A DNA stretch of 64,000 nt from Carpediemonas membranifera BICM (lineage: Eukaryota; Protista; Fornicata), in NCBI GenBank assembly GCA_019828565.1, contig JAHDYR010000025.1, forward strand, positions 186,001-250,000, read 5' to 3'. Each line of letters starts with the position of its first letter. Position 1 is the stretch's first letter. A program made the translations under genes and the position numbers. Below are positions 179 to 63,387 of this stretch, piece after piece. Under the pieces are notes generated by a model, which was not told where the DNA came from, did no database searches, and saw nothing but the letters and a program-made list of their open reading frames with translations.

Positions 179-292
179 GCTTACTAAAGGACTGAGAGGG
201 CAAGTGTGGGTCCCGGGCTGCAGGGCATGATTTATTGGTCGAATCGATCTCAAAATTTTCGGTTAAACTGCACCGAAACGGAATTCTCAACA

Positions 293-700
293 ATGACGAC
301 TGAGCCAGCAATAGCTTCAAACCCTGCAGCGGGAAACACAGGAAACACGAATACTGAGCGGCCTATGACTGCTGAAAGCACTACAGGCAGCTGCAAAGCC
401 GCTGATATGAACACAGCTTCTCGCCCGAGCACCGTTAACCCCAACGGCGCTGCGAGGACCACAAATGGGAAGAGAAATCTCCCTGAGCGTTTCCGGGATC
501 CCTCCAAATTCAAGAGCTTCGCGAAGAAGCAGCACCCGCTCTATACCACGACCTCCAGCCAGATCGGCGCCCGCGTCCCGTCCGCCCACGAGCTGCCGAC
601 CTCGTTCTATGGCAAGAGTGGCCGTTTCACCACAGGTCTGGCCGGTTTGTTCTACCGAAACAACGGACTGAACACCTCTGCCGACAAGCCCAAGGTCTAG
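293..700 (+). CDS. PIERCE1/C9orf116-like axonemal microtubule inner protein
   Basis: C-terminal HPLYTTTSSQIG...PTSFYGKSGRFT...YRNNGLNTS matches the Pierce1/2 family. ATG at 293 follows a TTAAACTGCACCG motif. Confidence 0.75.
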   Translation: MTTEPAIASNPAAGNTGNTNTERPMTAESTTGSCKAADMNTASRPSTVNPNGAARTTNGKRNLPERFRDPSKFKSFAKKQHPLYTTTSSQIGARVPSAHELPTSFYGKSGRFTTGLAGLFYRNNGLNTSADKPKV

Positions 701-922
701 AGGCGCGTGTATCAAAGCAAGTAAACATTCTATCGGACTGTCCCATCGGTATCGTTTTGTGCTCCATGGACGATAAGCTGGGTCCGAGGTGGGACTGGGT
801 CTCACCCACCCCGATACTGCCACGTCGGGGGAATCGGGCATGGCAGGCTATGCCTCGGGCGGGTCCTAGATATTCTCGGGCCGAATCAGATCTTCTCTGG
901 CTAACCCCGTGGAACTCCGTCG

Positions 923-2740
923 ATGCCAGCCTCGTCGCGACTTATTGGCATCGTTAGCCTTCTAAGACAGCTCACTGAGCTCTCAAATGACAAGTATTCT
1001 GCAACAGCGGGCCTGATCCCCGCACATTTGACATCCACACTGCGCCTTCTCGAGCAATCGCTCTCACGGCCGCCGTCTCCCGTACAACTTGATGCCGACG
1101 ATAACCTGGATATCCTTGCGGAGATTGAGCACCTCCTTGTGGCTCTTGAGCAGCTCCCCCAGTTTGAGCAACGAGCGGCTTGCCTCGGCCTCCTGAAGCA
1201 CGCTGTCCTCTACATCCGCAAGCCCCCACGCACAATCAACCTGGATGTACCCCTAGACAAGCTACCCGACGCGATCTTCACTCTGGCGTCCCCTATTCTC
1301 TCCGCCGTCATCATCACGGCGAACGCAGGCCCGGACGTCTGGTTCCTGTGCCAGAAGTTCGCCCTCATGAAGGTACAGTTCGAGAATGGACGCAGACGCA
1401 TCTTCCGCGATGGTCTTGAGACTATCGCCTTCGCTGGCCGCGTCTACTGCAAGGGTGTCAACGTCAACGGGCAGGTCGGCATCGGCAGCGACGTGCCCTT
1501 CATTCCTGAGCTAACCCGGGTGCGGCGGGTCCCGCCCCTCATCGACGTCTTCTACGGCGACACGTGCGTCTTCGGCATCACCGCCACCCACAAGCTTTGG
1601 GCATGGGGCGCCAACTCCTATGGCCAGCTGGGAGTCGGGTCGACCGAGGGCCGCATCAGCAGTCCCATGCGCGTGAGGCTGCCGGCCGACTGCAAGCCCT
1701 ACCTGACCCGCTCAACCCGCCACTCGACGTTTATCGCGACCAACAAGGGCTGGTTCGCCACTGGCCGCAACATGCTGGAGCAGCTGGGACTAGGGCACCG
1801 CCAGTTCGTCCGCACGCCCCAACGCATCAACTTCGGGTCCCACTTGGTGTCAGACATCTACAGCAACTACGACAGCACGTTCGCCTGGACAACGAGCGGC
1901 GAGGTCCTCAGCTGCGGATGGAACGAGTACGGGCAGGCCGGGACGGGCGGGGCCGAACGGACAATCCGGTGGCGTCCCGTGGTCCTGCCGTCGGTCGACC
2001 CCGAGGACGCCGCCGCCCCCCGGTTCTTCCCGGAGCACATCTACGTCTCACGGTGCAGCGCCTTCTTCTACGCCGCCCACCAGGTGCTGTGCTGCGGCTG
2101 GAACACCGTGTCCCAGCTCCCGTTCCAGCCCTCGGCCGAGCAGACCGTCGCCGTGCCGACACCCATCCCCCGCTCCATCGACAACCTCGTGTGCAACGCG
2201 GGGTCGACTGTGTTCCTGTCCGACGGCGAGCTGTGGGGCGTGGGGGACAACGAGTGCGGCCAGCTCTTCCCCAACGGGCCCTACCGCATCTACAACCCCC
2301 GCAAGCTGGCCCTGCCCTTCCCCGTAGCCCGTCTCCTGCTCTGTTCGTCCCAGCTGATGGGTGAGGTCAAGGGCACGATGTTCGTGCTGTCCCGGGCGGG
2401 CGAGTGGTGGGCCCAGGGGTACAACAACAGCGGGCTGTGCGCTGTGGGGTCCGCCGACTACCAGATCCCCCTCACCAGGGTCCGGGCCCCACACGGGACA
2501 CGCGATATCGTCTCGTGCACCCACGCCACGTTTATATTCACCGACAACGGCTTGTTCGCTTGCGGCGACAACGACGGCAACCGGCTGGGCGTGGAGCGTC
2601 GTGGCAACGTGCTTGACCCGATGCCCGTAGTCGAGCTGACCCAGGAGCTGCCGACCGCGTTCAACTGGGCCGTCCGGGACTCGCAGGTGCTGGAGATGGA
2701 TGTCGGGGAGACCGTGCCGCTGCTCGACGAGAGGCTTTGA
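923..2740 (+). CDS. RCC1-repeat beta-propeller protein
   Basis: Repeated WG.N.YGQLG / CGWN..GQ / GDN..GQL motifs. Confidence 0.9.
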   Translation: MPASSRLIGIVSLLRQLTELSNDKYSATAGLIPAHLTSTLRLLEQSLSRPPSPVQLDADDNLDILAEIEHLLVALEQLPQFEQRAACLGLLKHAVLYIRKPPRTINLDVPLDKLPDAIFTLASPILSAVIITANAGPDVWFLCQKFALMKVQFENGRRRIFRDGLETIAFAGRVYCKGVNVNGQVGIGSDVPFIPELTRVRRVPPLIDVFYGDTCVFGITATHKLWAWGANSYGQLGVGSTEGRISSPMRVRLPADCKPYLTRSTRHSTFIATNKGWFATGRNMLEQLGLGHRQFVRTPQRINFGSHLVSDIYSNYDSTFAWTTSGEVLSCGWNEYGQAGTGGAERTIRWRPVVLPSVDPEDAAAPRFFPEHIYVSRCSAFFYAAHQVLCCGWNTVSQLPFQPSAEQTVAVPTPIPRSIDNLVCNAGSTVFLSDGELWGVGDNECGQLFPNGPYRIYNPRKLALPFPVARLLLCSSQLMGEVKGTMFVLSRAGEWWAQGYNNSGLCAVGSADYQIPLTRVRAPHGTRDIVSCTHATFIFTDNGLFACGDNDGNRLGVERRGNVLDPMPVVELTQELPTAFNWAVRDSQVLEMDVGETVPLLDERL

Positions 2741-2851
2741 AGTTTAGTGCTTTCCATGTTATTACTGTTATAAACCACCAGTGCTGTCGCTGTGGCTGGG
2801 GCGGTCGACTGTGGCGGGTTTGCCCGGATGACGGACGGAGATCCTATTTGA

Positions 2852-4312
2852 ATGAGCGATGACGGCCAAACATGCCCAGCATGCCAGAATAAGCTTGAGA
2901 AACCAATGATACTGACTTGCGGACATGTATTCTGCAAGCGATGTCTCCGCGCGGCAATGCGTCGTGTTTCGGGTGATTCCTCCGTCGCCAAATGCCCTCT
3001 GTGTAGGACACCCATCACAATCAAGCCCATTCCCATCGGCGGCTTCTTAGACAAGGTTCTAGCTGCCGCTGTGCCGCCCAAGCCCGAGCCCGAGCCTGAG
3101 GCTCGCTCGAGAACGGCTTCCCTGGATGTGATCGAGCTAGACCTCGAGGAGGACCTTCTCAGGACACCACCGCCAGTCCGCCCGAAGAAGTCCAAGCATC
3201 GTGTGCCCGAGAAGCACATTGGCGCGGTGGGCGGCACGCTCGACACGATGACGGCATGGAAGGCGCGGCTTGACCGGCATGGAATCAAGATGAGCTGGAT
3301 CACACCAACGGGCAAGGACGCTGCCCAGCGGGCCCAGGTACGTGCGTTCTTCGGGCACTACCGAGACCTGCACAACGCGGAGATCGACGCGTGTGAACAC
3401 GCGGCCAGGACACCTATTCGGACGCTCGTGCGGCAGGCATGGTCGAAGACGGTCAACGGGGGCCGCCAGACGACGTGGAAGTCGAACCCCCAGTCCCCCG
3501 AGGCCGCTACGTCTGCAGCAGCGTCTGCCGCGGTCACACCCGCACAGCCTGCACGCCACGACATGGCACTGAGCGAGGGCACAGCGCCCCTGACCGCGGA
3601 TGACCTGGGGGCGTACGGCCGGCTCGCCCGCCGTGCACTGCGGCGCCAGACCGAAGCAAGGATCCGATCCGAGATGCGGACCGGATTTGACCGACTCCTC
3701 GCAAGTCAGGCGGATGCCGGCATGTGTGCCGCATGTGTCAGCCGTCTGCGGGATCTGGTGTCGAACGGCGGGATCCTCGACCGCGCGGTGAATGCGGCCA
3801 CAGCCGTTGGTGACTTCGCCCAGCACGAGGCGAGCCAGCGGGCTGACGAAGAGACTCGGGACAGGGCAGTCGACGCGACGGTGGCCATGACCGACGCCCA
3901 GGTTGAGACGACCGTGGCCGAGGGCGTCGCCGTGCTGCCCGCCGCCCCACCGGCCCGATACAGCCGGGCCGTGCAGACGACGGTCCTGCTCCAGGGCGCG
4001 TTGGGCCGGACGAAGACCAGCCTGACCCCCAACCGGACGCCCATGAAGCCCGGGGCCCGCCGTCCGGCCCGGGACCCCGAGCCGATGGCCGATCCTGGGC
4101 CGGTGCCCGCTGGGATCCACGTTTATTATTCAGACCTGCTCGGACGGCATATATACGTCAACGAGGAGACCGGCGTGGCTACATTGAAGAGGCAGTCCAC
4201 GGAGCATAACCGGACGGTGCGTGAGGCGGACACCCTCGACCACATCGCCGGGGTCGACTACAGGTCGAGGCCACAGGCGGAGACGGCGGTGGAGGATATT
4301 GAAATCGACTGA
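2852..4312 (+). CDS. C3HC4 RING-finger protein (putative E3 ligase) with a degenerate WW-like C-terminal motif
   Basis: N-terminal CPAC...CGHVFCKRC...CPLC; near the C-terminus PVPAGIHVYYSDLLGRHIYVNEETG. Confidence 0.8.
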   Translation: MSDDGQTCPACQNKLEKPMILTCGHVFCKRCLRAAMRRVSGDSSVAKCPLCRTPITIKPIPIGGFLDKVLAAAVPPKPEPEPEARSRTASLDVIELDLEEDLLRTPPPVRPKKSKHRVPEKHIGAVGGTLDTMTAWKARLDRHGIKMSWITPTGKDAAQRAQVRAFFGHYRDLHNAEIDACEHAARTPIRTLVRQAWSKTVNGGRQTTWKSNPQSPEAATSAAASAAVTPAQPARHDMALSEGTAPLTADDLGAYGRLARRALRRQTEARIRSEMRTGFDRLLASQADAGMCAACVSRLRDLVSNGGILDRAVNAATAVGDFAQHEASQRADEETRDRAVDATVAMTDAQVETTVAEGVAVLPAAPPARYSRAVQTTVLLQGALGRTKTSLTPNRTPMKPGARRPARDPEPMADPGPVPAGIHVYYSDLLGRHIYVNEETGVATLKRQSTEHNRTVREADTLDHIAGVDYRSRPQAETAVEDIEID

Positions 4313-4667
4313 GCCAGCTGCGTCGTCTGCTGGACGCCTGTCCTTGTCGTCCTGGTCCTGCAAGGCGGCACCGTTGTTTCTGTATGTGGTCCGCCGCATG
4401 AAGAATACTATTATTAAATTACCAGCCGCCTCTGGGACGGCGTGTGGCTGTCCGGCGTCTACTGCCTTGCTGGACGTCCGTTGACTTGGCCGACCTGCGT
4501 ATTCTGGTGAGCAAACCTGCCGACAATCTGAAGAATATCTAAAGGGCATGGCTGGCGGTTGGGCATCATATGTAGCCGCAACCATCACAATGAAGCTTCG
4601 GGCTCTCCGATTGTATGTCACTGGCAAGGATTCGCTTGATCCAAACGGCAACAGAAAGAATGGCCGA

Positions 4668-6608
4668 ATGCTCCTGGTATTGGTCGCCATTCTGCTCATA
4701 CTTGTACTTGGTGCTGTTTCTGCAGCATATATCTTCAATTCACGGGGTTCCTCATCATCCAGCCTTCACTCGCCCATCTCCCTGCGCCCCCAGCTGCCAG
4801 ATGAACCCCACGACATAGCCGCGTATCCTGTCGCGCCGCTACCCCCCACAAGGCCCATCAAGCGTTCCAAGGAGGGTGTGGAGCGGCTCATCATCGTCTG
4901 GTCCGAGATGGAGACCCAGGCGGACGCCGCCCGCCTGCTGATCTCCCTGCACGATTGCATGGCGTTCTCGAAGGACATACCGCCGATAGCCCTCATCAGC
5001 GACGGGTCAGACGAGGAGTTTGACACCCGCATGGCGGCCCTGGGCGACGTGACGGTGCGGCATCGGTCCGACGAGACGATTGCACACGACGTAGGCACCC
5101 TGTTGAAAGCTCACTCGAAGGTGCAGCAGGTGTTCTTACTAGCACCGGGCGTTGTGTTCCGGTCCGGTCTGCAGCCCGAGGCGTACAGCGACAACGGCCT
5201 GCACCTGCACCCTGACACTGACGGCGTGGCGGTCGTCACGGGGCGGCTGGCCATCAACCAGGTGCAGCGGGCCATGATGGCGGGGGAGACTCCGTATGAC
5301 GCGATCGCCCAGTGCCGGGAGAACAAGGAGACGGTGGTCCGCAAGCTCATCGACCAGGACGTCACCGTGCTGGCCCCGAACACCGAGATCAGCAAGGTCA
5401 AGCCCGAGCACGCGCTCTTCTCCCACCGCCGGACGATGATGTTCGTCCCCGACGGCGAGCGGCTCCCGGCGCTCACGGGCAAGATGCACCTGGCCCACCC
5501 GACCCAGGTCAAGCCGCGTCACCAGTATATGACGACCATCTACCGCTTCCTGGACGACAGATATGCCGCGGCAGACTGGATGGAGCCACGCAGGCCGCTG
5601 GACCCGGCTACAGACGCCTATGTGTTCTGGCTGACCGGCGCCGACCACGCCTACTGCCTCAACACGCTGAGCTCCATCTTCGGACTCCGGCAGCACACGA
5701 CCGCACGGATCATCCTGGCGACACAGGCCAAGCTGGACAAGTTCTCGGACTTCATCGCGGGGCTGGATGAGCTCGGCGCTGAGCACGTCTACGTCAACCA
5801 GAAGCTCCCGGTAGAGGTCAGCTCGAAGTTCAAGATCGATGAGCCCCGGTACAAGCTGGCCGTTGAGAGCATCCAGATCATGAACCTCAACCGGTTCCTC
5901 AGGAAGCCCGTCCGCAGGGCTATCCTGCTCGACCCCGACGTGACGGTGCTTCGGTGCCCCGACCACCTGTTCAGCCACCCTAGCGACATGGTGATGAGCA
6001 CGGAGCACATCCTGTTCGCGAACTCTGGTCTCGTCAAATGGGACCTGGAGAACGTCGACGCCAAGGGCCTGTTCTCCGCAGTTTTAGAGTTCATGCGGGA
6101 GCCCAGCAACGTATGCCAGTTCCCGGGCCACTTCTGGATGCTGGCAGATCAGGAGATCCTCTTCTGCTTCGCCAACAACTACCTCCACAACATGCCGCAG
6201 TTCGGGTCAAACGTCAACTGCCTCGACTCGACCCTCGACGAGACGCTCGGCCCCTTCCTATCGAGGTACAACGACACCGTCGTCCACCACTTCACGGGGT
6301 CCTTCAACCCCCAGGGCAAGCAGTGGAGCGTCCCCGTCGGCGGCACGTCCATGTCATACTCACTGTACTGGGACCAGGTCGAGTGTCTCACGGGCACCCC
6401 GCTCCAGTGCACAGACAAGGCCGCGGTGTCGACGTTCAAGCCAGGCGTGTGCAGCAGGTGCTACTGCCGACACGACCCGAGGCCCGGTGCTGTAGACGTC
6501 TCCCTCAGGGCCTGGGTCCGGCGGCACAGCAGGGAGAGCTGGTGGGGGACCGGGGCGCCGGCGTGCGGGCCGGAGACGCCCTACACGCACCCCGCGCTTA
6601 GTCTGTAG
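4668..6608 (+). CDS. Type II membrane glycosyltransferase, GT8-like
   Basis: N-terminal TM anchor (MLLVLVAILLILVLG) and motifs LLDPDVTVL..PDHLF, NSG, DQEIL, HFTG..KQW. Start is uncertain (4548/4590/4668). Confidence 0.7.
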   Translation: MLLVLVAILLILVLGAVSAAYIFNSRGSSSSSLHSPISLRPQLPDEPHDIAAYPVAPLPPTRPIKRSKEGVERLIIVWSEMETQADAARLLISLHDCMAFSKDIPPIALISDGSDEEFDTRMAALGDVTVRHRSDETIAHDVGTLLKAHSKVQQVFLLAPGVVFRSGLQPEAYSDNGLHLHPDTDGVAVVTGRLAINQVQRAMMAGETPYDAIAQCRENKETVVRKLIDQDVTVLAPNTEISKVKPEHALFSHRRTMMFVPDGERLPALTGKMHLAHPTQVKPRHQYMTTIYRFLDDRYAAADWMEPRRPLDPATDAYVFWLTGADHAYCLNTLSSIFGLRQHTTARIILATQAKLDKFSDFIAGLDELGAEHVYVNQKLPVEVSSKFKIDEPRYKLAVESIQIMNLNRFLRKPVRRAILLDPDVTVLRCPDHLFSHPSDMVMSTEHILFANSGLVKWDLENVDAKGLFSAVLEFMREPSNVCQFPGHFWMLADQEILFCFANNYLHNMPQFGSNVNCLDSTLDETLGPFLSRYNDTVVHHFTGSFNPQGKQWSVPVGGTSMSYSLYWDQVECLTGTPLQCTDKAAVSTFKPGVCSRCYCRHDPRPGAVDVSLRAWVRRHSRESWWGTGAPACGPETPYTHPALSL

Positions 6609-6990
6609 ATAGCATCTTATTGGGCTGTAAAATGACTGCCTTGCTCGTTGGATGGCATTATTGAGGAATATTTTGATTGGTATTTGATATGTCTCGCGTT
6701 TCTGTTGTTGACACAGTCGACAGTGACAAAACCCGCCACCAGAATTCACTCCAAATGGACTTTTCCCTTGTTATACCTTCTCTGGGCGCCTATGTCGCTG
6801 CTCAACTCGAACAGTACCCTATCAGCAGTATCACTGCAAACGAAAACGTTTCTATACTCCTCAACATCAAGTTACGTAGACATACGACAACAGAACCACC
6901 GACAGTCGCCAAAACAACAACGAAAACGACAAAAAAAGGTCTAATGCGATCCGTAACCAGGTGAGCAGGTCCAAAAAAGGCAAGACTGTC

Positions 6991-7917
6991 ATGGCAGAAG
7001 TTGTCAATACGATGATCGAGAATCACCCCCAGCTGGCCGAATGCCCCTTTGGAAAGACCAAATGGTCGCAGCTGATCGCTCTTGCACTTTCATACACTAG
7101 TGTGATCGACAAGAGCGGTCAGCTGTGCCATTTGCTGTCTATCCTCGACACCCTACGGGATTCGTCGTTTGTTCGGGCCGATGCCGAATTCCAAAAACAG
7201 TATCACGCCACAGTGAAGTTCTTTGAGCAGCCTGTCTGTTCAGAGAAGATCACATCACCTCTATTGCAGTTCATCGAACAGCATTATGCTGAGGCTTCAC
7301 TCGGTTTCGACGACCGGTCGAGCAAGCCTCGCAAGTACTCCGACCAGCGCACCAACTTCCGCCTCTGGGTTGCTGAAGCCATTGCCGCGTACGCTGTGTG
7401 TATCCACACGGGCCAACAGTTCGAGTCCTTCTTCAAGAAGAACACCAAGCGCGGCAGCCCCTTCACCTTTAACGTTGAAGGAGCACAGGCCACGAAGCAG
7501 CTCTTTAGTCTCGTGAATAACGCCCCGCTGCCCGCCAGGGTCTCTTCATTCGATGCCCCGCCGCAGGGCACGTTCCCCGGTGCCCGGGACTGTGACTCAC
7601 CTGACTCTATCTGCCTGTCACCCGATGCTGGTCCCCATATGGCCCCGATGCTGCAGGACCTCGCGTTCAGCACACCTTTCCTCGCCAACACTGAATGCCG
7701 CCCTTGTCTCACACCCACGAACGTCCCACTCGACATCCCGCCCCCTGCCGGGTCTGGCGTCGACCATGTTCCCCCCGTGCATGTCGCCCCCCACGCCGAC
7801 ACGCCACCGGGCAGTGCCATGCTCTCGTGTGGCAGTCCCAACATGGACCTCCCCTCCCTGGACCTCAACCTCGACTTCTACTCAGACAACCCGTACTCGT
7901 TCAACCTGATGATCTAG
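6991..7917 (+). CDS. Hypothetical protein with Pro-rich C-terminus
   Basis: ORF of about 310 aa with host codon bias and no recognised domain. Confidence 0.6.
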   Translation: MAEVVNTMIENHPQLAECPFGKTKWSQLIALALSYTSVIDKSGQLCHLLSILDTLRDSSFVRADAEFQKQYHATVKFFEQPVCSEKITSPLLQFIEQHYAEASLGFDDRSSKPRKYSDQRTNFRLWVAEAIAAYAVCIHTGQQFESFFKKNTKRGSPFTFNVEGAQATKQLFSLVNNAPLPARVSSFDAPPQGTFPGARDCDSPDSICLSPDAGPHMAPMLQDLAFSTPFLANTECRPCLTPTNVPLDIPPPAGSGVDHVPPVHVAPHADTPPGSAMLSCGSPNMDLPSLDLNLDFYSDNPYSFNLMI

Positions 7918-8242
7918 ATAAAGCTCTTGTGGTGAGACAGCTGTCTGTCTCATGAGACTGCTGCGGGCGGAGGATTGATCAGGGCGTGACTTGGAAATGT
8001 GGTCTGTGGGATGCTCCTCTGAGCTGTGCTGCCTTCTTCTTGGCCCCGTCCTCCGGATAAATCCAGCGCTCAAATTCTACTTTGGGTGTTGATGAGTGCT
8101 TTAACATTTTATCACGACTCTGCCAGCGGTTCTCGCGAAGGATACGATCATCAGGCAGCTTCTGCCGCCGCTTGCACATCCAAAGTGGGCTCAAGCAGCT
8201 GTGCATTTTTGTGCGTCATTCATGTAGCGTTAAGACTCAAGT

Positions 8243-8263
8243 ATTCTAATCCTGCGCGGCACA
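8243..8263 (+). repeat. 21-bp motif ATTCTAATCCTGCGCGGCACA, left flank of the Fanzor locus
   Basis: Exact copy at 62841-62861, copy with a 1-nt deletion at 10693-10712, partial copy at 55146-55158. Confidence 0.9.
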
Positions 8264-8592
8264 CTACCTCCACTCACCCACTTCAGCCCTCGTCTGTACC
8301 ATCGGGCTTTCGTGCTTTCAGTCGTCGGTCTGCACGAAAAGATGCGTCGTCCATCGTCTGTGTCGAACGCTGCTGTCTTCTTTCGCGTCTGTGCTCGTCT
8401 GTTACGCGCTCATCTGTCGTCCATTGCCGGCGTCTGAAGCTAATGTCGTCGTCGTCTTCGTCATCTTTGTCTGTTGTGAGAGACACTAGTGGTGGAAAGC
8501 GGTTGTAGCTGGTAGTAAAGACGCTTTGTGTTGTATGATGCTGGTTTCTTGTGTTTTGAGGGATGCTGTCAGCTGATGAACCCTGAAAAGAA

Positions 8593-10489
8593 ATGATCAA
8601 TGCAGGCAGCTCAATATACTCCGATGCCTTCCAAGATATATTGAGATTAACGGCGGAGGCGATAACAACGCGCCGCGGCGAGGAAGAGGAAATCTTGAAC
8701 CCGGCATGTGTTCTTTTTCACGCAGGCTAAGTACACATTCACTTGCCTGCTTGCGTGCGTCTCTGCATCTGCGCACGCGTTGACCCCACCGAGGACGGTC
8801 AACCTGTTTGACCAGGAGGTCCTCAAGCAGATCGTCAGCATTGCCAAGGGAAGAGAGTGCAAGGCAAAGGCAGCGGATCGGTGCAGGTGGATTGGCGACC
8901 TGGCGATGTGGAGGGACCCTGACATAACCCCACTCGTCCGGGACTTCAAGGAAGCCTACGTTGGAATTGCAGCGCCATTTCAGAGCTGGTTGGGCGAGTA
9001 CTCCACAGCCACCCGGTCTGGCTCTCGCGCGCGTCACCCGGGTACCTGACCCGTCTTCGTGCTGGATTAGACCGGGTGCGTTCGCTCCTCCATGATCGGC
9101 CGGGTGTTCGACAGGATTTTCTCGACACCCAAGGCGAGCTCGACACTGAGGTTGCCGCCATAGCCGCCGATCATGGCAGGTATCATCCTCAAATGCATGC
9201 ATCGCCCGAGGGGCAACGGGTGGGTCGCACTGGTACCGTGGCCGAGGCCCTCGTCGGCGTGCTGTCGTGCGTCACGCGCATGAGTGCTGCAGTGACCAAG
9301 CTGGTCACACTCACTCGTGCCGTGAACCTCGAGCTCAGTCAGGCCCTGCCAGAGCCGAAGCTCGTCCCGTTCGTGCCGATGGCACCGGTCAGGCCTGGGT
9401 TCATGACCATCGAGCGCGGAGTGACAGTGCTCACCCCAGCCATGAAGCTGTGCCCGCGAGCACGTGAATTGGTCAGCAACTAAGAATTTGACCGACGAGC
9501 AGGTTGATAGATACGAGCGTGATCACGGCGACATCACCAAACTCCGCAGAGTGCTCTCTGTGAAGACAGACGGGTCTCTGTTGCTGTGACGGTTTGGGTG
9601 GGTCGCGAGAAATACAGTGGCGGTCGGGTGGCTGACCGGCCCACGTACAAAAAGGGTAGCAGCAACAAGCGGGCTCGGCTCGGTCAGGATGACGCCGAGG
9701 CTACTCCTGCCCCGGACATTCAAGCTCTCATGGGCTTCGACCCTGGTGCTCGGTCGCTGGGCGGCTACACGATCCGCCGCCCAGACGGGCAGAGTGTATC
9801 TGGCGTACTCGCTAAGTGTGGCTACACTGCCACCCCCTCTTTCCGCGTGAATATGAGCGCAGCATCGTTCAAAACGACAAGTCTAGAGGCTCTCAAACAG
9901 TCGATTAGGTTTGTCCATGAGAACATCGTTCAGATCATCAACGAGGGGACGAGAAAAGTGTTTCCGCCGTGCGACTTTTGCCAATCACTGTCTGCGCCAG
10001 AAGCACTTCGCCCGGGCTGGACGTCAACTCATGGATGATCTCGGCGGGCGCCCCTCGGAGCCCATTCACCTCGAAGTCGCGTATGGGGCTGCACTGTTCG
10101 GTTCTGCCGGCACTCCCTCCTGTGCTCCGTACCGCCACTTTGCTCGAGCACTTCCTGGCATAATGCTCCGGCACAACGTCGTCGTGACTGTCACGATGGT
10201 CTCCGAATTCCGCACTTCCATCGTGTGCCCATACTGCAAAGCACACTTCAGACGTGTGGTGCACACACACCGCACCATGCTCTGCCAGAATCCCGCGTGC
10301 GAGGGAGCTCCATGGCGCGTTGAACGGCTACGTCGGCATCCCGAGCAGAGAGACATACTTCTCAATCTCTCTCACCGAGATAAGAGCGCCAGCGAGAACA
10401 TCCATTGGTGCACCTTCGATGCAACTTCAGATCAGATAGAGCAATCTCCTTTCCACTCCCAGAGAGGTGCTCTTCCTCGCTATCATTAA
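8593..10489 (+). mobile_element. Fanzor (Fanzor1-like, TnpB-derived RuvC nuclease), ORF interrupted by about 5 frame changes
   Basis: Motifs in order across frames: KTDG(V)SVAV (9563-9588), RuvC-I MGFDPG (D 9739), FRRATFANHCLRQK, VAYGAALFG...AP, RuvC-II VSEFRTS (E 10205), Zn finger CPYC...CQNPAC, RuvC-III HRDKSASENI (D 10379). About 630 codons in total; the 5' boundary is uncertain. Confidence 0.85.
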
Positions 10490-10692
10490 CTTGCGAAGTT
10501 GAGCAAGCACGCGCTGCAGCGCGCGTGATATGCTGCGCACGGTTGATAGAGTATGATGAACCACACTGCGATCCTGATGCTGCTTGGATCACTGTGTGTT
10601 TTGGACTCAACAATTCTACTCGGCCGTTGACTACTAAGCACCCCACCCTACCCGCGCCTTACCCTTTACGTGAGTTGGCTCATAAATGGATG
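10490..10692 (+). ncRNA. Candidate Fanzor omegaRNA scaffold
   Basis: Immediately downstream of the Fanzor stop, with four stem-loops: 10508-10527, 10562-10598, 10607-10630, 10665-10686. Confidence 0.45.
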
Positions 10693-10712
10693 ATTCTAAT
10701 CCTGCGGGCACA
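10693..10712 (+). promoter_or_regulatory. Second copy of the ATTCTAATCCTGCG(C)GGCACA motif, right flank of the Fanzor and 11 nt upstream of the TMEM120 ATG
   Basis: Direct sequence match to 8243-8263 and 62841-62861. Regulatory role is inferred. Confidence 0.6.
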
Positions 10713-10723
10713 ATTCAGTGATA

Positions 10724-11737
10724 ATGAGCGACGACGGCGCTGCGGCAATCGAGAGTCTTCAGACAACTCATGCCGAACTAATAACCAAATTCAAGTCATA
10801 CGTGGAGCAGGAGAAGCAACTGACCTCGGCACGTGGGGCGTTGGAGAAGGAAGCAAAGAGCTTTTCGAAAATCCATCGTGAAGTGGTTAAAATGGCCAAG
10901 ACAATGACACCCGAGGAGCAAGACAAGCTCTCAGACATGGCGCGCACAGTGAAGCCCATTCGTGGCCGCATGCCCGTCCGCGGCGGTTTCCCGCTCAGCC
11001 CCATCATCGGATCCGTCAACGTCCGCCTCTCTCCATCTGAGCGTATCGCATTCAAGCAGGCATATGAGCAGTGGAAGTTCAAGGCCGCAATGTTCCTCAT
11101 CGCGGCTCTGCTCGTCACACTTGTCGTTCCTGTGCTCGACATTCTCTCGACGACGCTGCTCTTCGCCTTTTACATCATTATCACTCTCCGCGAGTCTATA
11201 CTCACCCGCAACGGGTCTCGTATCCGATTCTGGTGGCGTGCGCACCACTACCTGTCGTCCTTTGCGGCCTTCATCCTCGTCACCTGGTGCTCCGTAGACT
11301 GCGCGGTCTGGCGCGACATTCGCTGCCCCGTGCTGTCGTTCATGATCTACGTCTTCATCGTCCAGATCCTGCAGACCCGGTACCAGTTATCGCGGTTGTA
11401 TACCCTCACCGCCCTCGACCGGGCGCATGTCATGGACACCACGAACGCAGAGACCATCCAGTACCGCCGGGGTGTCTCCATGCCCATCCTCCTGCCCTTC
11501 CTGTGGATCGCACACGGCTGGCAGTTCCTCATCGGATACCGGTGCGCCATCGCCTGGGGCAGCAGGATGCTGCTGGCCTTCAATGACCCGTACGTCTCTG
11601 CCCCCCAGTGGCAGGGCGTCATTATCGCTGGGTCATTCATGCTGCTAGCGATCGGCAACATCTACACGACGCTGCACACCGTCGTTCGTAGGGTGAAGAG
11701 CGTCGTCCGGCAGAGGCGCGAGAGGAAGGCGGAGTAG
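10724..11737 (+). CDS. TMEM120: TMEM120/TMPIT family membrane protein
   Basis: N-terminal coiled coil, FKQAYEQWK, LRESIL..NGSRIRFWWRAHHYLS, multiple TM helices. Confidence 0.9.
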   Translation: MSDDGAAAIESLQTTHAELITKFKSYVEQEKQLTSARGALEKEAKSFSKIHREVVKMAKTMTPEEQDKLSDMARTVKPIRGRMPVRGGFPLSPIIGSVNVRLSPSERIAFKQAYEQWKFKAAMFLIAALLVTLVVPVLDILSTTLLFAFYIIITLRESILTRNGSRIRFWWRAHHYLSSFAAFILVTWCSVDCAVWRDIRCPVLSFMIYVFIVQILQTRYQLSRLYTLTALDRAHVMDTTNAETIQYRRGVSMPILLPFLWIAHGWQFLIGYRCAIAWGSRMLLAFNDPYVSAPQWQGVIIAGSFMLLAIGNIYTTLHTVVRRVKSVVRQRRERKAE

Positions 11738-11881: not shown

Positions 11882-12856
11882 ATGGGACATACAGCAGAAA
11901 AATGGACATCATACGCGGATACGCGCACAGGAATCAACCCCTTCCTTCACGACATGAGCCAGAAGCCCCGGAATGCGTTGGACAAGATGATTCAGTACTC
12001 TCTGATGCTCTCGATCCTACCCGCTCGCCTCATGGTTCGCTGGTCGTTCTTCATGTACAAGAAGCAGAGCACGTTCTTCTCGAAGCTTCTCCCCGCACGT
12101 GCTTCCCGCCCCATCCTCTGGGCGCTGCACACGCTCGTCCTCCGGGTCTATCTCGCCCTATTCGGCTTCTACTACATCGATGCCCGCAGTGTGGGTAAGC
12201 CCAAAGCCTCCATCGTCGACCGGATTGCCCCCGACGTCGAGCCTGGCGACCTCATCATCGCCAACCGGATCTCGTGGACCCAGATCCTCTATCTGACCTT
12301 CCGGTTCAACCCCATCTACGCATTTCCCGCTACGGACTACACTGAGGTGCCGGCCACTGTCCCCGTGAAGGCTGTGGACTTCTCGGAGGCCGTGAAGCTG
12401 ATGTCAAACAACAGTCCGATCGAAACGAAGCACTGCAAGCCACTGTCCGACGTGATTTACCAGTCCAGACAAAAGGGCCGGTGCGTCGTGTTGTTCCCAG
12501 AGGGCTGCTCCACCAACGGCAAGGGCCTGCTGAAGTTCTTGCCCGTCCTCGACTCGAACATCACCGCCGTGACCCCTAAGCGCGTCCTCACGATGGCCTT
12601 CAAGATCAAGGACACCAAGGGTCTCGCATGGATCAACACAGGCTTCGAAAAACGCAGCCTGGGTGACCGCATGACGGCTGAGTCAGTCGCCGTGCAGTCT
12701 ATGACAGTCAAGGCGATCGAGACCCTTCCCGTGCTTACTGTCGACGGGCAGTGGTGGGCCGACACCCGGAAGGTCCTTGCCCAAAGCATCCAGGTGCCCT
12801 GCATGGATTTGACCGTTCTTGACCGGAAGGAATTTTTCAAGGCTTACCACAGTTAA
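11882..12856 (+). CDS. Lysophospholipid acyltransferase-like protein (Vps66/Loa1 type)
   Basis: EKW..YADTRTGINPF N-terminus and VLFPEGCSTNGKGLLKF. Motif I is degenerate (ANRISWTQ). Confidence 0.75.
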   Translation: MGHTAEKWTSYADTRTGINPFLHDMSQKPRNALDKMIQYSLMLSILPARLMVRWSFFMYKKQSTFFSKLLPARASRPILWALHTLVLRVYLALFGFYYIDARSVGKPKASIVDRIAPDVEPGDLIIANRISWTQILYLTFRFNPIYAFPATDYTEVPATVPVKAVDFSEAVKLMSNNSPIETKHCKPLSDVIYQSRQKGRCVVLFPEGCSTNGKGLLKFLPVLDSNITAVTPKRVLTMAFKIKDTKGLAWINTGFEKRSLGDRMTAESVAVQSMTVKAIETLPVLTVDGQWWADTRKVLAQSIQVPCMDLTVLDRKEFFKAYHS

Positions 12857-12984
12857 GCAAGAAGCCATTGGTGTAAATACGAGAGTGTCTAGGGTAGCAT
12901 GGGCTCGGCTGACTTGAGAGGGCCTCAAATATTCGAGATTCGAGATCGCAAAGTCCAGAATTGGAGACAGAGTTGTCAGTTCGA

Positions 12985-14151
12985 ATGAGCGATGATGGGG
13001 ATGACACCCGCTCGTCTTACAGTAGCAGTGGACGTGCAATGGCTGATGCCACCGGCATGGGCGAAAATAGCGATCCGTACGCGAATCATTTCCGCTCCAC
13101 ACCTTATGATCGAAGTAGGACGCCAAGCGAGCACTCGCAGGCATCATCAGCACCGCCACCACATCTTAGGCACTATCCATACCTCTCAGAGTTCCCACAA
13201 CCGACACGGCCCGGCGGCATGGCACTGCCCGTTTGGGAGGACCGGCAACCATCCAACATTTCCACGATAACCCCGCCGCCACAGGACATCGACGACGGAA
13301 GAGAAACCGAGAGGATGGGCCTGACCAAGGGCGACCTCCCCGCGGAGTTGAAGCTCATGATTGGCCGCGGCGAGGAGCTAACAAAAGCTCGGGCTCTGGA
13401 GAGGATGGGCGTCCTCACCGCGTTATTCACCCTCCTGCAGGGGCTCACGTCGGCGTACATCCTTGCGTGGACGTTCATATTCGCTGACATCCCGTTGAGC
13501 TGGCTCAGCGCCATTGCGGGCATCATCATTTCACTCATATTTGGCCTCATCGGCGGGATCCCCATTGCCATAGTTACGGTGCTCGGCCTCGTGATCAAGC
13601 ACACCTGGGGCCTGCCCCGCGTCGTCCTCGTGACGGCGCTCTACCTCCTCTACGGCTGGTTTCCCTCGGCCGTGTTCGCATTCCTCGCGGTAGGGGTCGT
13701 TGCGTTGATTGGGGGGCCGTGGGATCCGAGGGCAGTCTTCATCGTGGCCTCGCTGACCCACGGCATCTCCTGGGTGGTCGTGTCAGTCGTCTCGCTAGCC
13801 AGCTGGTTCATTCGAAACAGGTTGTTCGCCGCAAACCCAGTGCTCGCTGCGAAGGCGAGGGGGAGTGTTGGCCTCGTCGTAGCCATCTTCGCCATGTCGA
13901 TGATTGGGATGACCCTATCGACGATGGGGACGCTCCTGCTGACCAACGTATTCCTCATTGCCCTGTCCCTTCTCGGGGCGGGCGGGGTCGTGGTGACGAG
14001 GATGGCAACGCCCGTTGTTGTGGCGATCACGTTCATCGGGATATGTGCAGCGTTCTCAATACTGAGCGCTGTCCAGTTCACTCGGAGCCGGCGGAGGCGG
14101 CTCGTGGAGCAGGCGACGCGGGCACAGATCCAGTCGATGGACCTCATTTGA
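12985..14151 (+). CDS. Multi-pass membrane protein of unknown function
   Basis: Disordered N-terminus followed by about 6-8 hydrophobic segments. Confidence 0.7.
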   Translation: MSDDGDDTRSSYSSSGRAMADATGMGENSDPYANHFRSTPYDRSRTPSEHSQASSAPPPHLRHYPYLSEFPQPTRPGGMALPVWEDRQPSNISTITPPPQDIDDGRETERMGLTKGDLPAELKLMIGRGEELTKARALERMGVLTALFTLLQGLTSAYILAWTFIFADIPLSWLSAIAGIIISLIFGLIGGIPIAIVTVLGLVIKHTWGLPRVVLVTALYLLYGWFPSAVFAFLAVGVVALIGGPWDPRAVFIVASLTHGISWVVVSVVSLASWFIRNRLFAANPVLAAKARGSVGLVVAIFAMSMIGMTLSTMGTLLLTNVFLIALSLLGAGGVVVTRMATPVVVAITFIGICAAFSILSAVQFTRSRRRRLVEQATRAQIQSMDLI

Positions 14152-14442
14152 ATAGAATAGGCCGACACACCTGCCTATCAGTATTAGTATTAAACAACGC
14201 AGCTGGCGGTCTGGTGGAGGGAGCAGGCGCCGTCTGATGGCGGGTTGTGTAGTCTTACTGAAGTATCATAGAGTGCACTCATCCACCGTCTGCCTTACCT
14301 TACCGTCCAGCTCTGTGGAAGTGCTTTTGACGCAAGATGTGGTTCGTCAGGCGCACTCTGCGGAAGCTCTTGACCATCCCAGCCAAGTCTAGTCTTGCCC
14401 ACGTCGCAGGATAAGACACGAGAATCCGCGAGTCCCTACAGG

Positions 14443-15532
14443 ATGCAGGACAACACTACGAGGTTCACGCATAATCACAAGGACAACTTCTATGTTGATA
14501 TATCACTCCAGTGCAGCATCCCATCCAGTATGTCGTATTTGGCAAAGTTATTCAGTTCCATTCCCTCCAAAGCTTTTCAAGGACGCAGTAATAGACACAA
14601 AGTCATATCTCCTCCCTACAGTAGGAACACTTGAAAGCCGCATTGTTGATCCTCTGATTTGCCCGACGAATTGGGGTATTTCGGCCGAGGAGGCGTCCAT
14701 CCCTGAGGACCAGCCCAACGAGGACGGCACGTACTTCATAGACGCTAGAGACGCAGAGCTGCTCGTATACACCGAGGCAGTGCTGTCGAAATGCGCCCCG
14801 AAGAAGACCAAGTGGTTCTCGAAGCTCGAGCACGCCCGCCACCGCGAGCAGCACGAGCAGCGCATTAGCGTTTCCCAGCGCAAGGTCGAGAGGACCAAGG
14901 CATATGTTCCACATGACAAGGATTCCCGTCGGGAGGCTATTGAGGCTTCGTTCGACGTCGTCATGAGGGATCGGGACACCACCGCCCACCGCAGGTCCGC
15001 CGCAGAGAAACGGGCCGCGGATATGCTTGAGAGACACTATCCCAAGCAGAAGGACTTCTTCGACGGCGCCAAGATCACGGTCGAGCCCTTCCTGCCGGCC
15101 CTGACGCCCGGCCTTGACACCCAGCTGCCGGAAAACCCTATGATCTGGGACACCGCACTCGTGACGATGCCCGCAGACATCCAGCCGACGCCAGGCAGCT
15201 TCATCGTCGGTTTGGACAACGACGAGTGCGTCGTCCTCAACCGGACGAAGGAGGGCTACGCAGCCGCCGGCCGCACGGGCTTCAAGAGCCGCCCTGCCAC
15301 GGACCCGGTCATCTTCTGGGAGGACACCGTCAACGGGCTGCCCGTTGTCCGGTACGTCGCCCGGGCTCCGAACATGGACATGCAGCGTCTGCCCGTGACC
15401 GGGGCGACTCTCGCCACACGGTTCGAGGTCGTCGGGCGGGACCTGACCGAGGAGGAGCAGGCGCAGATCAAGCAGAACGCGGACATCATCGGGGAGCGGG
15501 GCCACGCGGTGGGGGTCAGTCAGGACCTGTAG
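14443..15532 (+). CDS. PAF1: RNA polymerase II-associated factor Paf1; 2 exons, intron 14528-14555
   Basis: Splicing the 28-nt GTATGT...TTATTCAG intron gives CSIPSIPFPPKLF. Downstream DARDAELL, WFSKLE, AIEASFD and HYPK..VEPFLP match Paf1. Confidence 0.75.
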
Positions 15533-15604
15533 ACGCACGGCCGCTGGGTGTAAATATCGGGCCATGGGCTGGGGTGGGACATTGGTGCGGAGGGTCATCA
15601 GACG

Positions 15605-17506
15605 ATGGCACTGATGGACGAGAAGCTGCTGAACCCTCAGGCGGAGAAGGTGAAGCAGGAGCTGCTCGCCGAGGAAGAATCTCTCATAGATGTGTTCGTA
15701 GAGCAGCAAGAAACCGCGGAGAGTGTTGTCGTTGAGCTCCGCGAATGCGATGAGGTCCTAGACAAAATGGAGAAGTCCTTCGGCTCTTTCCAGCAGAGTA
15801 TCACGGCCCTATACCGCGACATTCGCCACCTGCAGGACGAATCCTCTCTTCTCCGCGTCCAGCTGTCGAATCGACAAGCCGTGGCCGGCGAGATCGCTGA
15901 GTATGTCTCCAAGTGCGAGCTCAGCACGGGCACTATCAAGCTCCTGCTCGAGGGAAGCATCAACAGACAGTACCACGAGGCGCTGGGCGAGCTGTCCGAC
16001 CGCCTCACGTTCCTTTCCTCCCTCGACGCCGTCCGAGCCCACCCCGGCGCCCTCAAAGCGTACAGCGACCAGATCGACGTGCTCTCCATAGCTGTAGCAA
16101 AGCGCCTGCAATCCTTCCTGAGTCGGCTGATCGTCTCCCTTCGCAGGGCTGAGGGCCGTGCGGACCGGGGCACCGACATCGCCCCGCATGCCCCGGTCCT
16201 CTCGTTTCTGCACCTCCATTGCGCCCCAGTGGCGACGCTGATCACCTCACTGTACGAGGACGTCATGTCCAAGGTCTACCTCTCATCGTTCACGTCATAC
16301 CTCAAGAGCATCAACCCGGACGCCGACCCCGTCGGTCTCATCGGCGACACGGGCACCATCTGGAAGCGGGGGCGGGTGGGGCTCTCTAACATAGCGGAGT
16401 CACTCTCCCTCGACGGCCGGCGCAGCATCCTCACCACGGCCAGCACGCGGGCCTCCATCGCACCCGCCCCGACCCTCACGGTCGAGAGGGCTGCCATCTC
16501 AGTGGTACAGCTGCTGGGCGAGGTCGCGTTGACCGAGTCCGCGTTCGACTGGGACTTCTTCTCCGGCAGGGAACCCGCCATGGCTGGTAAGATCCTCGCC
16601 AAGCCGATTGACGCCGTTGTCGAGACGGTGGGCCGCTGGATGGACAAGACGACGGACGCCGTCGGTCTCATGGCCGCCTTGGTCGCTGTACACGCCGTCC
16701 GGTCCCGCATGGAGCGGCATGGCGTCGGCGTCCTCACATCGGCGATGCAGCGACTCGACATGCTCGGCATCCCGCATTTTATGGCACTTATCGACCGTCA
16801 CATCGCATCGCTGCCAGAGAGGCTCGACGCCGATGGTGGCATCAACCAGGTGACCCACCGCTTCGGCAAGCTTCTGGCCTCGATCCTCGCGGTCAACGTC
16901 GTCTACCCGGAACTCTGCCCCCACGCCCCCAGGAAGCTGAGCGACGCCTTCAACCGCTGTATCATGGCGACGCAGGTGAAGGGCAAGCCCGAGGGCCGCC
17001 TGGCCTTCCTCGCCTCGAGCTACTACCACATCCTCGGGGAGCTGCGGCACGTCGACGGCGGTGACGTCAAGGCCAGCTATGCGAACCAGCTTCGGTCCTG
17101 TGTCGAGGCATACGGGCAGCTGGCGGCCAATGCCTTGTGCCCCGCGGTGTTCTCGTTCGTTGCCTCCGTCGACGCCGTCGTGGGTCACGACGGTTCGTAC
17201 TCTGAGTTCGTCAAGGAGAGCGAGGAGGCGCCCGGCAACATCAGCATCGCCCTTGAGAAGGCGGTGCGGGCTTTCGCCGCGCAGTGGGAGGCCGGTGTCC
17301 AGACGATGGCAACGCAGGTCGCGGGCCAGCTGTGCGGTGGGGCAGAGGGCCTGGCGTTTAAGGCGGCGTTCTCGTCGTTGAACAGGCTCAATGCGAGGCT
17401 GGGGTCGCTCGTACAGGGGTCGCCGCAGAATCTCATCAGGTTGACTGTGCCGGCATCGAAGTTAAGCGCCGCAAAGGATGATATCCTGGCAAAGCGGGGC
17501 TGGTGA
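15605..17506 (+). CDS. VPS52: GARP/EARP complex subunit Vps52
   Basis: N-terminal ELRECDEVLDKME..FQ..I..L..DI..LQ.ES..L.V.L.NR coiled coil typical of Vps52. Confidence 0.85.
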   Translation: MALMDEKLLNPQAEKVKQELLAEEESLIDVFVEQQETAESVVVELRECDEVLDKMEKSFGSFQQSITALYRDIRHLQDESSLLRVQLSNRQAVAGEIAEYVSKCELSTGTIKLLLEGSINRQYHEALGELSDRLTFLSSLDAVRAHPGALKAYSDQIDVLSIAVAKRLQSFLSRLIVSLRRAEGRADRGTDIAPHAPVLSFLHLHCAPVATLITSLYEDVMSKVYLSSFTSYLKSINPDADPVGLIGDTGTIWKRGRVGLSNIAESLSLDGRRSILTTASTRASIAPAPTLTVERAAISVVQLLGEVALTESAFDWDFFSGREPAMAGKILAKPIDAVVETVGRWMDKTTDAVGLMAALVAVHAVRSRMERHGVGVLTSAMQRLDMLGIPHFMALIDRHIASLPERLDADGGINQVTHRFGKLLASILAVNVVYPELCPHAPRKLSDAFNRCIMATQVKGKPEGRLAFLASSYYHILGELRHVDGGDVKASYANQLRSCVEAYGQLAANALCPAVFSFVASVDAVVGHDGSYSEFVKESEEAPGNISIALEKAVRAFAAQWEAGVQTMATQVAGQLCGGAEGLAFKAAFSSLNRLNARLGSLVQGSPQNLIRLTVPASKLSAAKDDILAKRGW

Positions 17507-17702
17507 GCAGACTGGTAGTTGAATTATTGTCTGACGTTAAACTGCGCTTAACTTTGCTTTGTCCGGAGAGCAGGAATTGGAGTTCTGAGTCATGCAGGGG
17601 CGCGTTAGTGCTGGATTAACGAGAAATGTGGCTAAAACGTCTGGAAAGAAGCAGAAGCTTCCCGATGGGCCAAAAGCTATCCGGTTTCACCGTATTCGGA
17701 CT

Positions 17703-18413
17703 ATGAAGAATGAAGCAACGTTCACAGTGATGCAGAAAGACGATATATCCGTTGAGATGCTGATGGAACTGCTCAAGCTTGATCGCCAGCACTGTATTGA
17801 TGTTATTCTGTCCAAATCCGACAACCGGCCCGTTCCGGCCTTCGTCCAGCTCCTGTTCCAGCCCCGCTTCAAGCCACACGACGCCACTGCGCCCATATAC
17901 CCAAGATCCAACGTCTCCGACACCCTCCCCGGGATGTTCTTCCTCGTCACACCCTTTGCACCAGTGTGCACCTTTGTGCTGAACACAACCGACATGCAGA
18001 CCCTGGTGCAGAACCACGCGCTTCAGATTCACCCAGACGTCCCGTTACAGGCCACCAAACGTGTACGGCCAGGCCGTCTGACGACTCTGGTGAGCATACT
18101 CGATGCCTGTGACGTCACGTCGCAGTTTACCCTCGAAACGAAGCCGGTCGACCACCACACTGTCACTCCAGACACCGCCATCACCACATGGGACCTCCGC
18201 ATCCAACTTCTTCAGACCCAGGTCGCCGTCGTCCTGGGGGAGCTGGCCGGCCCATCGATGGAGGCTGTCGGGACTGCCGAGCCGGAGACCCACAGCGGCG
18301 GGCCGGGGTTCCTGGTGACGCTGGGGGCGAGGGGGACGCATGCATTCCTCAACGGGGACGAGATGGCTGAGCTCGTCGGCAAGGGGGCGGTGGCAGCCAT
18401 AAGGTGTCAGTAG
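17703..18413 (+). CDS. Hypothetical protein
   Basis: ORF with host codon bias followed by a GTAAAT 3' signal. Start is uncertain (17592 or 17703). Confidence 0.55.
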   Translation: MKNEATFTVMQKDDISVEMLMELLKLDRQHCIDVILSKSDNRPVPAFVQLLFQPRFKPHDATAPIYPRSNVSDTLPGMFFLVTPFAPVCTFVLNTTDMQTLVQNHALQIHPDVPLQATKRVRPGRLTTLVSILDACDVTSQFTLETKPVDHHTVTPDTAITTWDLRIQLLQTQVAVVLGELAGPSMEAVGTAEPETHSGGPGFLVTLGARGTHAFLNGDEMAELVGKGAVAAIRCQ

Positions 18414-62585: not shown

Positions 62586-62840
62586 TGGCATCTTAGGGCC
62601 GTTTGGGCCGCCATTATGATATAAATATTGAAATTACCCGCCTCCAGGCCGCGTGTGACGGAGTTGGGGACACAGAAAGACCGTTAGTCCATCAATTGTT
62701 CGCGAAATACGTCATGAGGTCGAGTACAAGAGTTCCGCAGTTTATGTCATGAATCACGTGGTAGAGGTTTATGTGGAGGATTCATGTAAAGGTGACTTAA
62801 GCTGTCGACCCCCCTAGGATGAACTCCAGAGGACTGAACA

Positions 62841-62861
62841 ATTCTAATCCTGCGCGGCACA
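62841..62861 (+). promoter_or_regulatory. Third copy of ATTCTAATCCTGCGCGGCACA, 8 nt upstream of the PCC1 ATG
   Basis: Exact 21/21 match to 8243-8263. Confidence 0.6.
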
Positions 62862-63118: not shown

Positions 63119-63387
63119 AGGTGCTGACCTTTCGAGGCTCCCGCGTATGAGCGAACGAGAACGACTGCGTCCCGACTTGACGACGTTATATGTCGCTCCC
63201 GATCCCGATGGTGGCGCCGGTGACAGTTGCCATCAAGCCCACCGTCTCTGCGAGATACTTCATGAGAGTGATTCAAGTGAGTCTCCCTGCCGACTTAAGA
63301 CGTGAGTAGGGGGATACAGGGCAGCATGTAGCACTTTACTGACCCTTCAACAGCTTGTGGCATAAACTGCACCGAGAAACACGTTCA

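Follow-up and report, generated by a model that had tools for sequence, protein, structure and literature searches.

Introduction

Fanzors, the RNA-guided nucleases of eukaryotes, are recognized by the sequence DPG in RuvC-I and by a catalytic Glu lying six residues before the zinc finger, while the motif TDG is the hallmark of Fanzor1 (PMC10711439). In SpuFz1, a protein of 638 aa, the catalytic triad is D383/E541/D606 (PMC10432273). The 3′ RNA of Fanzor1 has three stems; the end of the element falls within this scaffold and the adjoining flank acts as the guide. Characterized Fanzors require a TAM, the known ones including TTA, TTTA and TTAAN. The described carriers of Fanzor1 are DNA transposons and Helitrons, and under the leading model for the role of Fanzors in eukaryotes the only beneficiaries are DNA transposons that excise. 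According to a 2026 review, nothing indicates that a Fanzor is encoded by any retrotransposon (PMC13565253). Tf1, for its part, inserts with a 5-bp target duplication.

The window discussed here is a stretch of 64 kb from the free-living metamonad Carpediemonas membranifera. In a preliminary description several short ORFs starting at position 8593 had been pieced together into a Fanzor, and six-frame translation of the window recovered every motif named there, in the same order. The gene is a Fanzor1-type pseudogene on the plus strand (8600-10489); position 8600, rather than 8593, is the start codon matching the intact copy described below, and the mobile unit, at 8223-10712, is larger than the gene. 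On this strand the TDG motif of the WED domain (9566-9574; residue 334 of the intact protein) is followed by the RuvC-I DPG with its catalytic Asp (9739-9747; D392), which is invariant in the family alignment, by the RuvC-II Glu, shifted so that it precedes the zinc finger by six residues (10205-10207; E547), by a CCCC zinc finger (CPYC ... CQNPAC; 10226-10300) and by the RuvC-III Asp in HRD (10379-10381; D605). The catalytic residues had been called intact, and the three codons (at 9739, 10205 and 10379) are indeed all kept, although the frame that should join them is broken six times.

Fanzor copies in the genome

The C-terminal piece of the gene matches 17 C. membranifera proteins (71-95% identity) on many contigs, and is therefore part of a repeat family. 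Further searches revealed dozens of copies in three families, which are about 40% identical to one another, so that the window copy is not unique. One gene is uninterrupted: P0066 (KAG9394109.1; locus L010), of 642 aa, with TDG at residue 334 and the residues D392, E547, C554, C557, C573, C578 and D605. The pieces of the broken window copy were searched separately, and this natural intact paralogue, not a repaired protein, served as the query; a profile search of 1.84 billion representatives returned 25 matches, and all of those that could be named come from Carpediemonas. Alignment reveals that the Fanzor fingerprints are kept in all three families, F-D392-P-G being present in each. The window copy would be missed by ORF callers, as had been predicted, but many of the others are annotated in GenBank as hypothetical proteins and one is a full ORF. 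Wrong names, cytosine deaminase and chromosome partition protein Smc, are given there to copies P0041 and P0023.

In chimeric genes (P0017, P0018, L004) a family-3 N-terminal half is joined near DPG to a family-1 RuvC half. In P0002 (L002) the RuvC-III Asp has become Asn, a change that is natural in GtFz1 and increases the activity of SpuFz1.

The window holds four remnants of Fanzor elements. At 14259-14390 (minus strand) a family-3 Fanzor fragment is joined via filler to a family-3 end; the joint is a GGTAAGGTAAGG-type filler, two similar 12-bp flanks enclose the fragment, and the whole looks like a repair-templated insert. Similar filler occurs in L002 at about 4240 and at a loose contig end. 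At 63282-63355 (minus strand) a degenerate family-2 left end lies beside a perfect promoter-like motif. A 105-bp solo or mini element of the same family as the pseudogene (62757-62861, plus strand) is flanked by the duplication AATCA and has a perfect promoter-like motif at a distance of 7 bp; it was formed by deletion at a short shared word, and an ATG follows 8 nt after it. Just to its left is a 343-aa ORF with the His-box motifs of fatty acid desaturases (61554-62585, plus strand).

Element architecture

Bounded by TG...CA, the element (8223-10712) is flanked by a target duplication of 5 bp (ATTCA) and carries a 30-bp direct repeat, here called S, at each end. Upstream, at 8203-8210 on the minus strand, the promoter-like motif (consensus TAA[AC]CTGC) is present in degenerate form and ends 7 bp before the left duplication (8218-8222). 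The left terminal repeat, TGT...CACA (8223-8263), consists of an 11-bp left-specific part and S (8234-8263), which contains the promoter-like AATCCTGC. Directly inside it is a minus-strand purine tract (8264-8287; 18/24 purines), which is either PPT-like or, read on the plus strand, a pyrimidine-rich leader; families 2 and 3 have such a tract at the same place (20/24 and 22/24 purines; background 2.4% to 0.07%). At the other end, the outer part of the right S (10693-10712) ends in CACA, with its promoter-like motif facing the host gene, and is followed by the right duplication ATTCA (10713-10717), where the flank guide would start under the canonical model, and by the ATG of TMEM120 at 10724. 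To the left of the element are an orphan 318-aa ORF (6961-7917, plus strand) and a short ORF (7979-8206, minus strand), neither with a Pfam match.

In the window copy only, the right repeat is split by a 70-bp insertion with duplicated ATTCTA (10623-10692). No source for it was found in the 263 kb of compared DNA, and the bin that contains it (10625-10741) is covered by public contigs. Within it a CA is followed by a run of pyrimidines, as on the inner side of left ends, and it may be derived from a fourth family.

All three families share one plan: a left-specific part, the 30-bp S, the minus-strand purine tract, a leader, the gene, a structured 3′ region and S again. Measured from the duplications, the left end varies in length from 24 to about 280 bp. 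Terminal inversion amounts to 4-6 bp. The left and right repeats have 30 bp alone in common, which in the intact copy differ at 5/30 positions, and in ordinary copies no exchange is seen between the left-specific and the right-specific part. The difference is inherited; family-2 loci that lie apart have identical mismatches between left and right. The element carries no transposase, as had been noted before. It had further been called non-autonomous or domesticated; domestication is not supported, the window copy being one decayed member of a mobile family with many copies.

Two other loci have unusual arrangements. In L007 about 640 bp of extra DNA, a captured flank, lies between the second and third repeat (10826-11492), inside one duplication. 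In L001 (7889-8542) a permuted copy has the short repeat on the left and a long left-type repeat on the right, with its duplication intact.

Insertion sites

Sixteen insertions with both ends, from twelve loci, were compared. The 5-bp duplication is perfect in 13/16, has a single mismatch in one and is mismatched in two, which are probably recombinants; beyond this set, a 24-bp solo also has a duplication. In 15/16 sites the sequence GCAG[GT]TTA (allowing two mismatches) stands 6-8 bp before the duplication, against a background of 1.5%, and in the sixteenth it is reversed, at 7 bp. Its reverse complement, TAA[AC]CTGC, is sevenfold enriched in the window (15 occurrences, 2.2 expected) and in many cases precedes an ATG by 10-25 nt; because of this enrichment and position we regard it as a candidate core promoter motif, possibly a bidirectional one. 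The duplications often include TCA, an initiator-like word. Each S likewise carries the promoter-like motif 6-10 bp from its end, near the spacing found at empty sites, and a host ATG often follows. Two insertions have an intact duplication but start at the second TG, 2 bp further inside, which would be expected of an integrase able to use either CA.

Movement of the element

We tentatively read the window copy as a dead member of a non-autonomous Fanzor1 element that relies on an integrase supplied in trans, uses S as a mini-promoter and takes its guide from the flank; as a whole we would give this reading slightly less than an even chance. It builds on the type and decayed state of the protein, on the ends with their 5-bp duplication, on the constant distance to the motif and on the presence of S at both ends. 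A retroviral-type integrase, most likely that of the resident Ty3/gypsy chromoviruses, would insert TG...CA units where transcription of host genes begins, with the factor that binds the motif as its tether. The left S would drive the Fanzor transcript, and the right S would give the downstream host gene a motif again at similar spacing, so that insertions would be tolerated. Support for insertion by an integrase-type enzyme is good; gypsy elements would be the likely helper, and a DNA route of movement is possible.

The genome does contain chromodomain Ty3/gypsy elements, with 84-87 bp LTRs that start with TG and, in L009, a 5-bp duplication. Two of them lie in one Fanzor gene (L009, 127-4801 and 5283-9802); these two readable gypsy insertions are thus inside a gene and not at the promoter-like motif, which counts against the helper. 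A third, in L010, adjoins an assembly gap and was excluded; in its pol region (230-5845) a near-perfect duplication of 1546 bp borders an N and is possibly an assembly artefact. In the first L009 element antisense ORFs precede the 3′ LTR, a stretch of which also occurs in the right repeat of family 2. The ends of gypsy and Fanzor elements are weakly alike (family 2 versus one LTR, p ~0.002 before correction for 32 tests). No helper with matching ends was found in the 263 kb of compared DNA, and a search for Carpediemonas gypsy integrases returned other organisms alone.

Of the features of LTR retrotransposons, the TG...CA ends, the 5-bp duplication and the polypurine tract (minus strand, in three families) are present, but two co-terminal identical LTRs are not: 30 bp are shared, and the left and right versions are inherited separately. 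Because the normal LTR cycle makes both ends identical and would erase an inherited difference, the element falls outside the LTR class on this point, and the same difference speaks against the gypsy helper. The element has no tRNA-type primer site (TGG-type), nor have the resident gypsy elements; self-pairing may serve as primer.

Candidate omega-RNA and guide

Under the preferred reading the 3′ end of the transcript would fold into a scaffold with the three stems usual for Fanzor1, S being the last arm; about 15 bases of the flank that follows would serve as guide against the empty allele, and the element would copy itself into empty sites via break repair. Folding predicts such a scaffold at 10487-10622 (plus strand), with a pair of short hairpins and, at the end, a long stem in which the right repeat supplies the 3′ arm; in the window copy it is interrupted by the 70-bp insertion. 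In families 1 and 2 the predicted long stem closes two bases before the end of the element, and the three-stem shape is common to both despite little likeness of their DNA (z -1.7 to -4.7); for family 3 a terminal hairpin is predicted. Left repeats are predicted not to fold. The candidate has no match in Rfam. Against the preferred reading, no TAM consensus stands beside the duplication in the 16 sites, compensatory pair changes are absent among 10 near-identical copies, and empty alleles would be rare, since the strain is reported to be haploid (though probably sexual).

The guide might instead be fixed, namely S itself, with TT[TG]A, found before S at left ends only, as the TAM. The nuclease would then cut solo repeats and the left repeats of other elements, and repair would paste in the gene cassette together with a second S; the integrase would merely seed small empty units at promoters, and an element whose left S differs from its right S would thereby be immune to itself. 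We consider this homing scheme doubtful, though a serious competitor. TTTA (family 1), TTGA (family 2) or TTTA-C (family 3) stands just 5′ of the left S and never of the right one, resembling known Fanzor TAMs, and the scheme would account for the inherited left/right asymmetry alongside intact duplications. Mismatches between left and right within the first 15 bases of S occur in the intact copy, the window copy and 3/3 full family-2 elements; a near-intact family-3 copy lacks bases 21 onward of its left S, and in many left repeats and solos either the TAM-like word or the initial half of S has been lost. Yet in all three families the predicted scaffold has S engaged in base pairing, and in L003, L007 and L010 the TAM-like word survives together with a perfect match to common right repeats. 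The word also sits some 30 bp upstream of the point where transcription presumably begins and could be TATA-like, the lesion pattern (4/5 versus 1/4) is not significant (p=0.21), and the promoter half of S would be kept by selection in any case. The fuller proposal, that Fanzors with a fixed guide against their own terminal repeat home into solo repeats planted at promoters by a retrotransposon integrase, seems to us rather unlikely; if true, it would amount to an RNA-guided homing cassette that parasitizes a retroelement and gives each struck gene a replacement promoter.

Repair in C. membranifera is reported to proceed without NHEJ. Error-prone repair of this kind would, on the preferred reading, leave many deletions, solos and chimeras between families; under either guide it fits the deletions, the fillers, the captured piece of about 640 bp in L007 and the family-3/family-1 chimeras. 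L009 includes a polymerase theta-like gene (12060-17831) with helicase, POLQ helical and polymerase A domains, which fits the microhomology and filler junctions.

Quite improbable, in our judgement, is a cut-and-paste DNA transposon whose integrase-like transposase, of the Ginger or IS481 type, is encoded elsewhere, with the Fanzor restoring excised donor sites, like the Fanzors of other elements, and the direct repeats acting as promoters only. Movement as DNA would preserve unequal ends, and TG...CA ends with duplications of 4-6 bp are typical of the Ginger/IS481 group. The terminal inversion of only 4-6 bp tells against it, as does the failure to find such a transposase in the 263 kb of DNA or among the homologues; the purine tract would be left unexplained and the TAM problem would stay. 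Excision would, on the other hand, give the Fanzor a purpose (PMC13565253). Transib, Crypton, DIRS and Helitron elements were ruled out by end sequence and duplication.

Decay and identity of the window gene

Over 2373 nt the window copy is 96.0% identical to the intact ORF P0066, relative to which it has six frameshifts, after 8639 (-29), 8713 (+2), 9014 (-1), 9454 (-2), 9571 (-1) and 9953 (+1); the changes at 9014, 9571 and 9954 are absent from the family majority. That this is a functional or domesticated gene, whose breaks are Nanopore assembly errors or a micro-intron, is hardly credible and largely refuted. The assembly was built with R9.4 Nanopore reads, and 4/6 frameshifts are changes in homopolymer length that could be residual errors, but the other two are of another kind: a 29-bp deletion at codon 14, with stops directly after it, and a 2-bp deletion at 9454 accompanied by linked substitutions that are apparently common to another copy, P0019. 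Nor is the 70-bp insertion in the candidate RNA end a homopolymer error; pN/pS against the intact copy is 0.76, and a perfect duplication marks the element as an insertion. From the frameshifts, the stops after the 29-bp deletion, the 70-bp insertion and this pN/pS we conclude that the window copy is dead and not domesticated.

We are confident that the protein is of the Fanzor1 type, in agreement with the preliminary assignment: DPG, the shifted Glu, TDG, the CCCC finger and the triad spacing (392/547/605 in the 642 aa of the intact copy, SpuFz1-like) are all present. Feature ranking in the ESM Atlas places 600-800 aa Cas12f1-like/DUF8286 clusters first (score 0.98), and so does the structure comparison, with TM 0.59-0.64 to these TnpB-family clusters of giant viruses and eukaryotes as against 0.34-0.40 to prokaryotic TnpB; the two results were counted as one source. 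PDB and Pfam searches gave weak zinc-finger matches (E 0.016-1.5), among them PF07282 (E=0.073), and by sequence the PDB yielded Cas12f alone (E 0.3-1.5). Sequence and profile searches retrieved no homologue outside Carpediemonas, and the viral contigs searched held no relative. AlphaFold (AF2) models from two shallow alignments (pLDDT 36 and 31) were too poor to test the active site; with them Foldseek found no match, and the top Z in VIA, 4.1 for RuvC resolvase, was, like the 3.7 for TnpB, within noise.

That the protein is not a TnpB/Fanzor nuclease and its motifs are coincidental, as the missing matches outside Carpediemonas and the weak PDB and Pfam values would allow, is highly improbable given five ordered motifs conserved across diverged families, the SpuFz1-like spacing, the concordant Atlas results and a predicted structured 3′ RNA at the element end. 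The motifs are no product of chance, for the window copy is 96.0% identical to an uninterrupted ORF of 642 codons and two sister families keep the same motifs.

Significance

The freely accessible literature held no paper on a Fanzor in Carpediemonas or Metamonada, nor any description of a Fanzor on a promoter-targeting carrier with retrotransposon-like ends. The enzyme is a new, divergent member of the Fanzor family, and what is new beside it is the carrier; the unusual part of the locus, absent from the preliminary description, is its promoter targeting together with the ends of the element, their direct repeats and the duplicated target. Three old Fanzor families, their active sites kept, ride an integrase-type, promoter-targeting element that has retro-like marks and no readable TAM. 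With one intact gene, defined ends and two opposed predictions for the guide, the question is testable in vitro. The range of Fanzor1 is extended to Metamonada, a divergent compact nuclease becomes available for tool screens, and the family is a likely source of breaks and of promoter turnover in a genome without NHEJ. The window copy itself is a fossil; importance rests on the family and its carrier.

Comparison with known systems

In the homing of IS200/IS605 and IS607 by TnpB, an RNA-guided cut is followed by copying from the filled allele, a logic that is likely here as well; unlike those elements, the Carpediemonas element has no TnpA, and its TAM and empty allele cannot be read from the flanks. 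Ginger/IS481-type and Tn7-like elements resemble it in their TGT...ACA ends and 5-bp duplication, and Tn7 in oriented insertion at a fixed distance from a motif. They differ in that neither long inverted repeats nor a transposase were found in the element or the compared DNA, and there is no evidence that the RNA-guided protein selects the site of insertion.

Ty3/gypsy chromoviruses, Tf1, Ty3 and their non-autonomous TRIM-type derivatives are alike in TG...CA ends, 5-bp duplication (Tf1), promoter-proximal insertion, a purine tract beside the terminal repeat, solos and an antisense cargo gene. Unlike theirs, the Carpediemonas end repeats share only the outer-right 30 bp and stay unequal, and the element has no gag, RT or primer site.

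From Fanzor1 elements it is set apart by the lack of terminal inverted repeats, by its direct 30-bp repeats, by a random 5-bp duplication with no adjacent TAM, by promoter targeting at a fixed distance and by a Fanzor with no detectable sequence relative outside the species. It nevertheless agrees with Fanzor1 (SpuFz1 of Spizellomyces punctatus and SfAV Fanzor1; PMC10432273, PMC10711439) in protein length, DPG, shifted Glu, TDG, CCCC finger and triad spacing, in being a transposase-free, multi-copy element with gene-less derivatives, and in a three-stem 3′ RNA, predicted here, whose last stem includes the end of the element.
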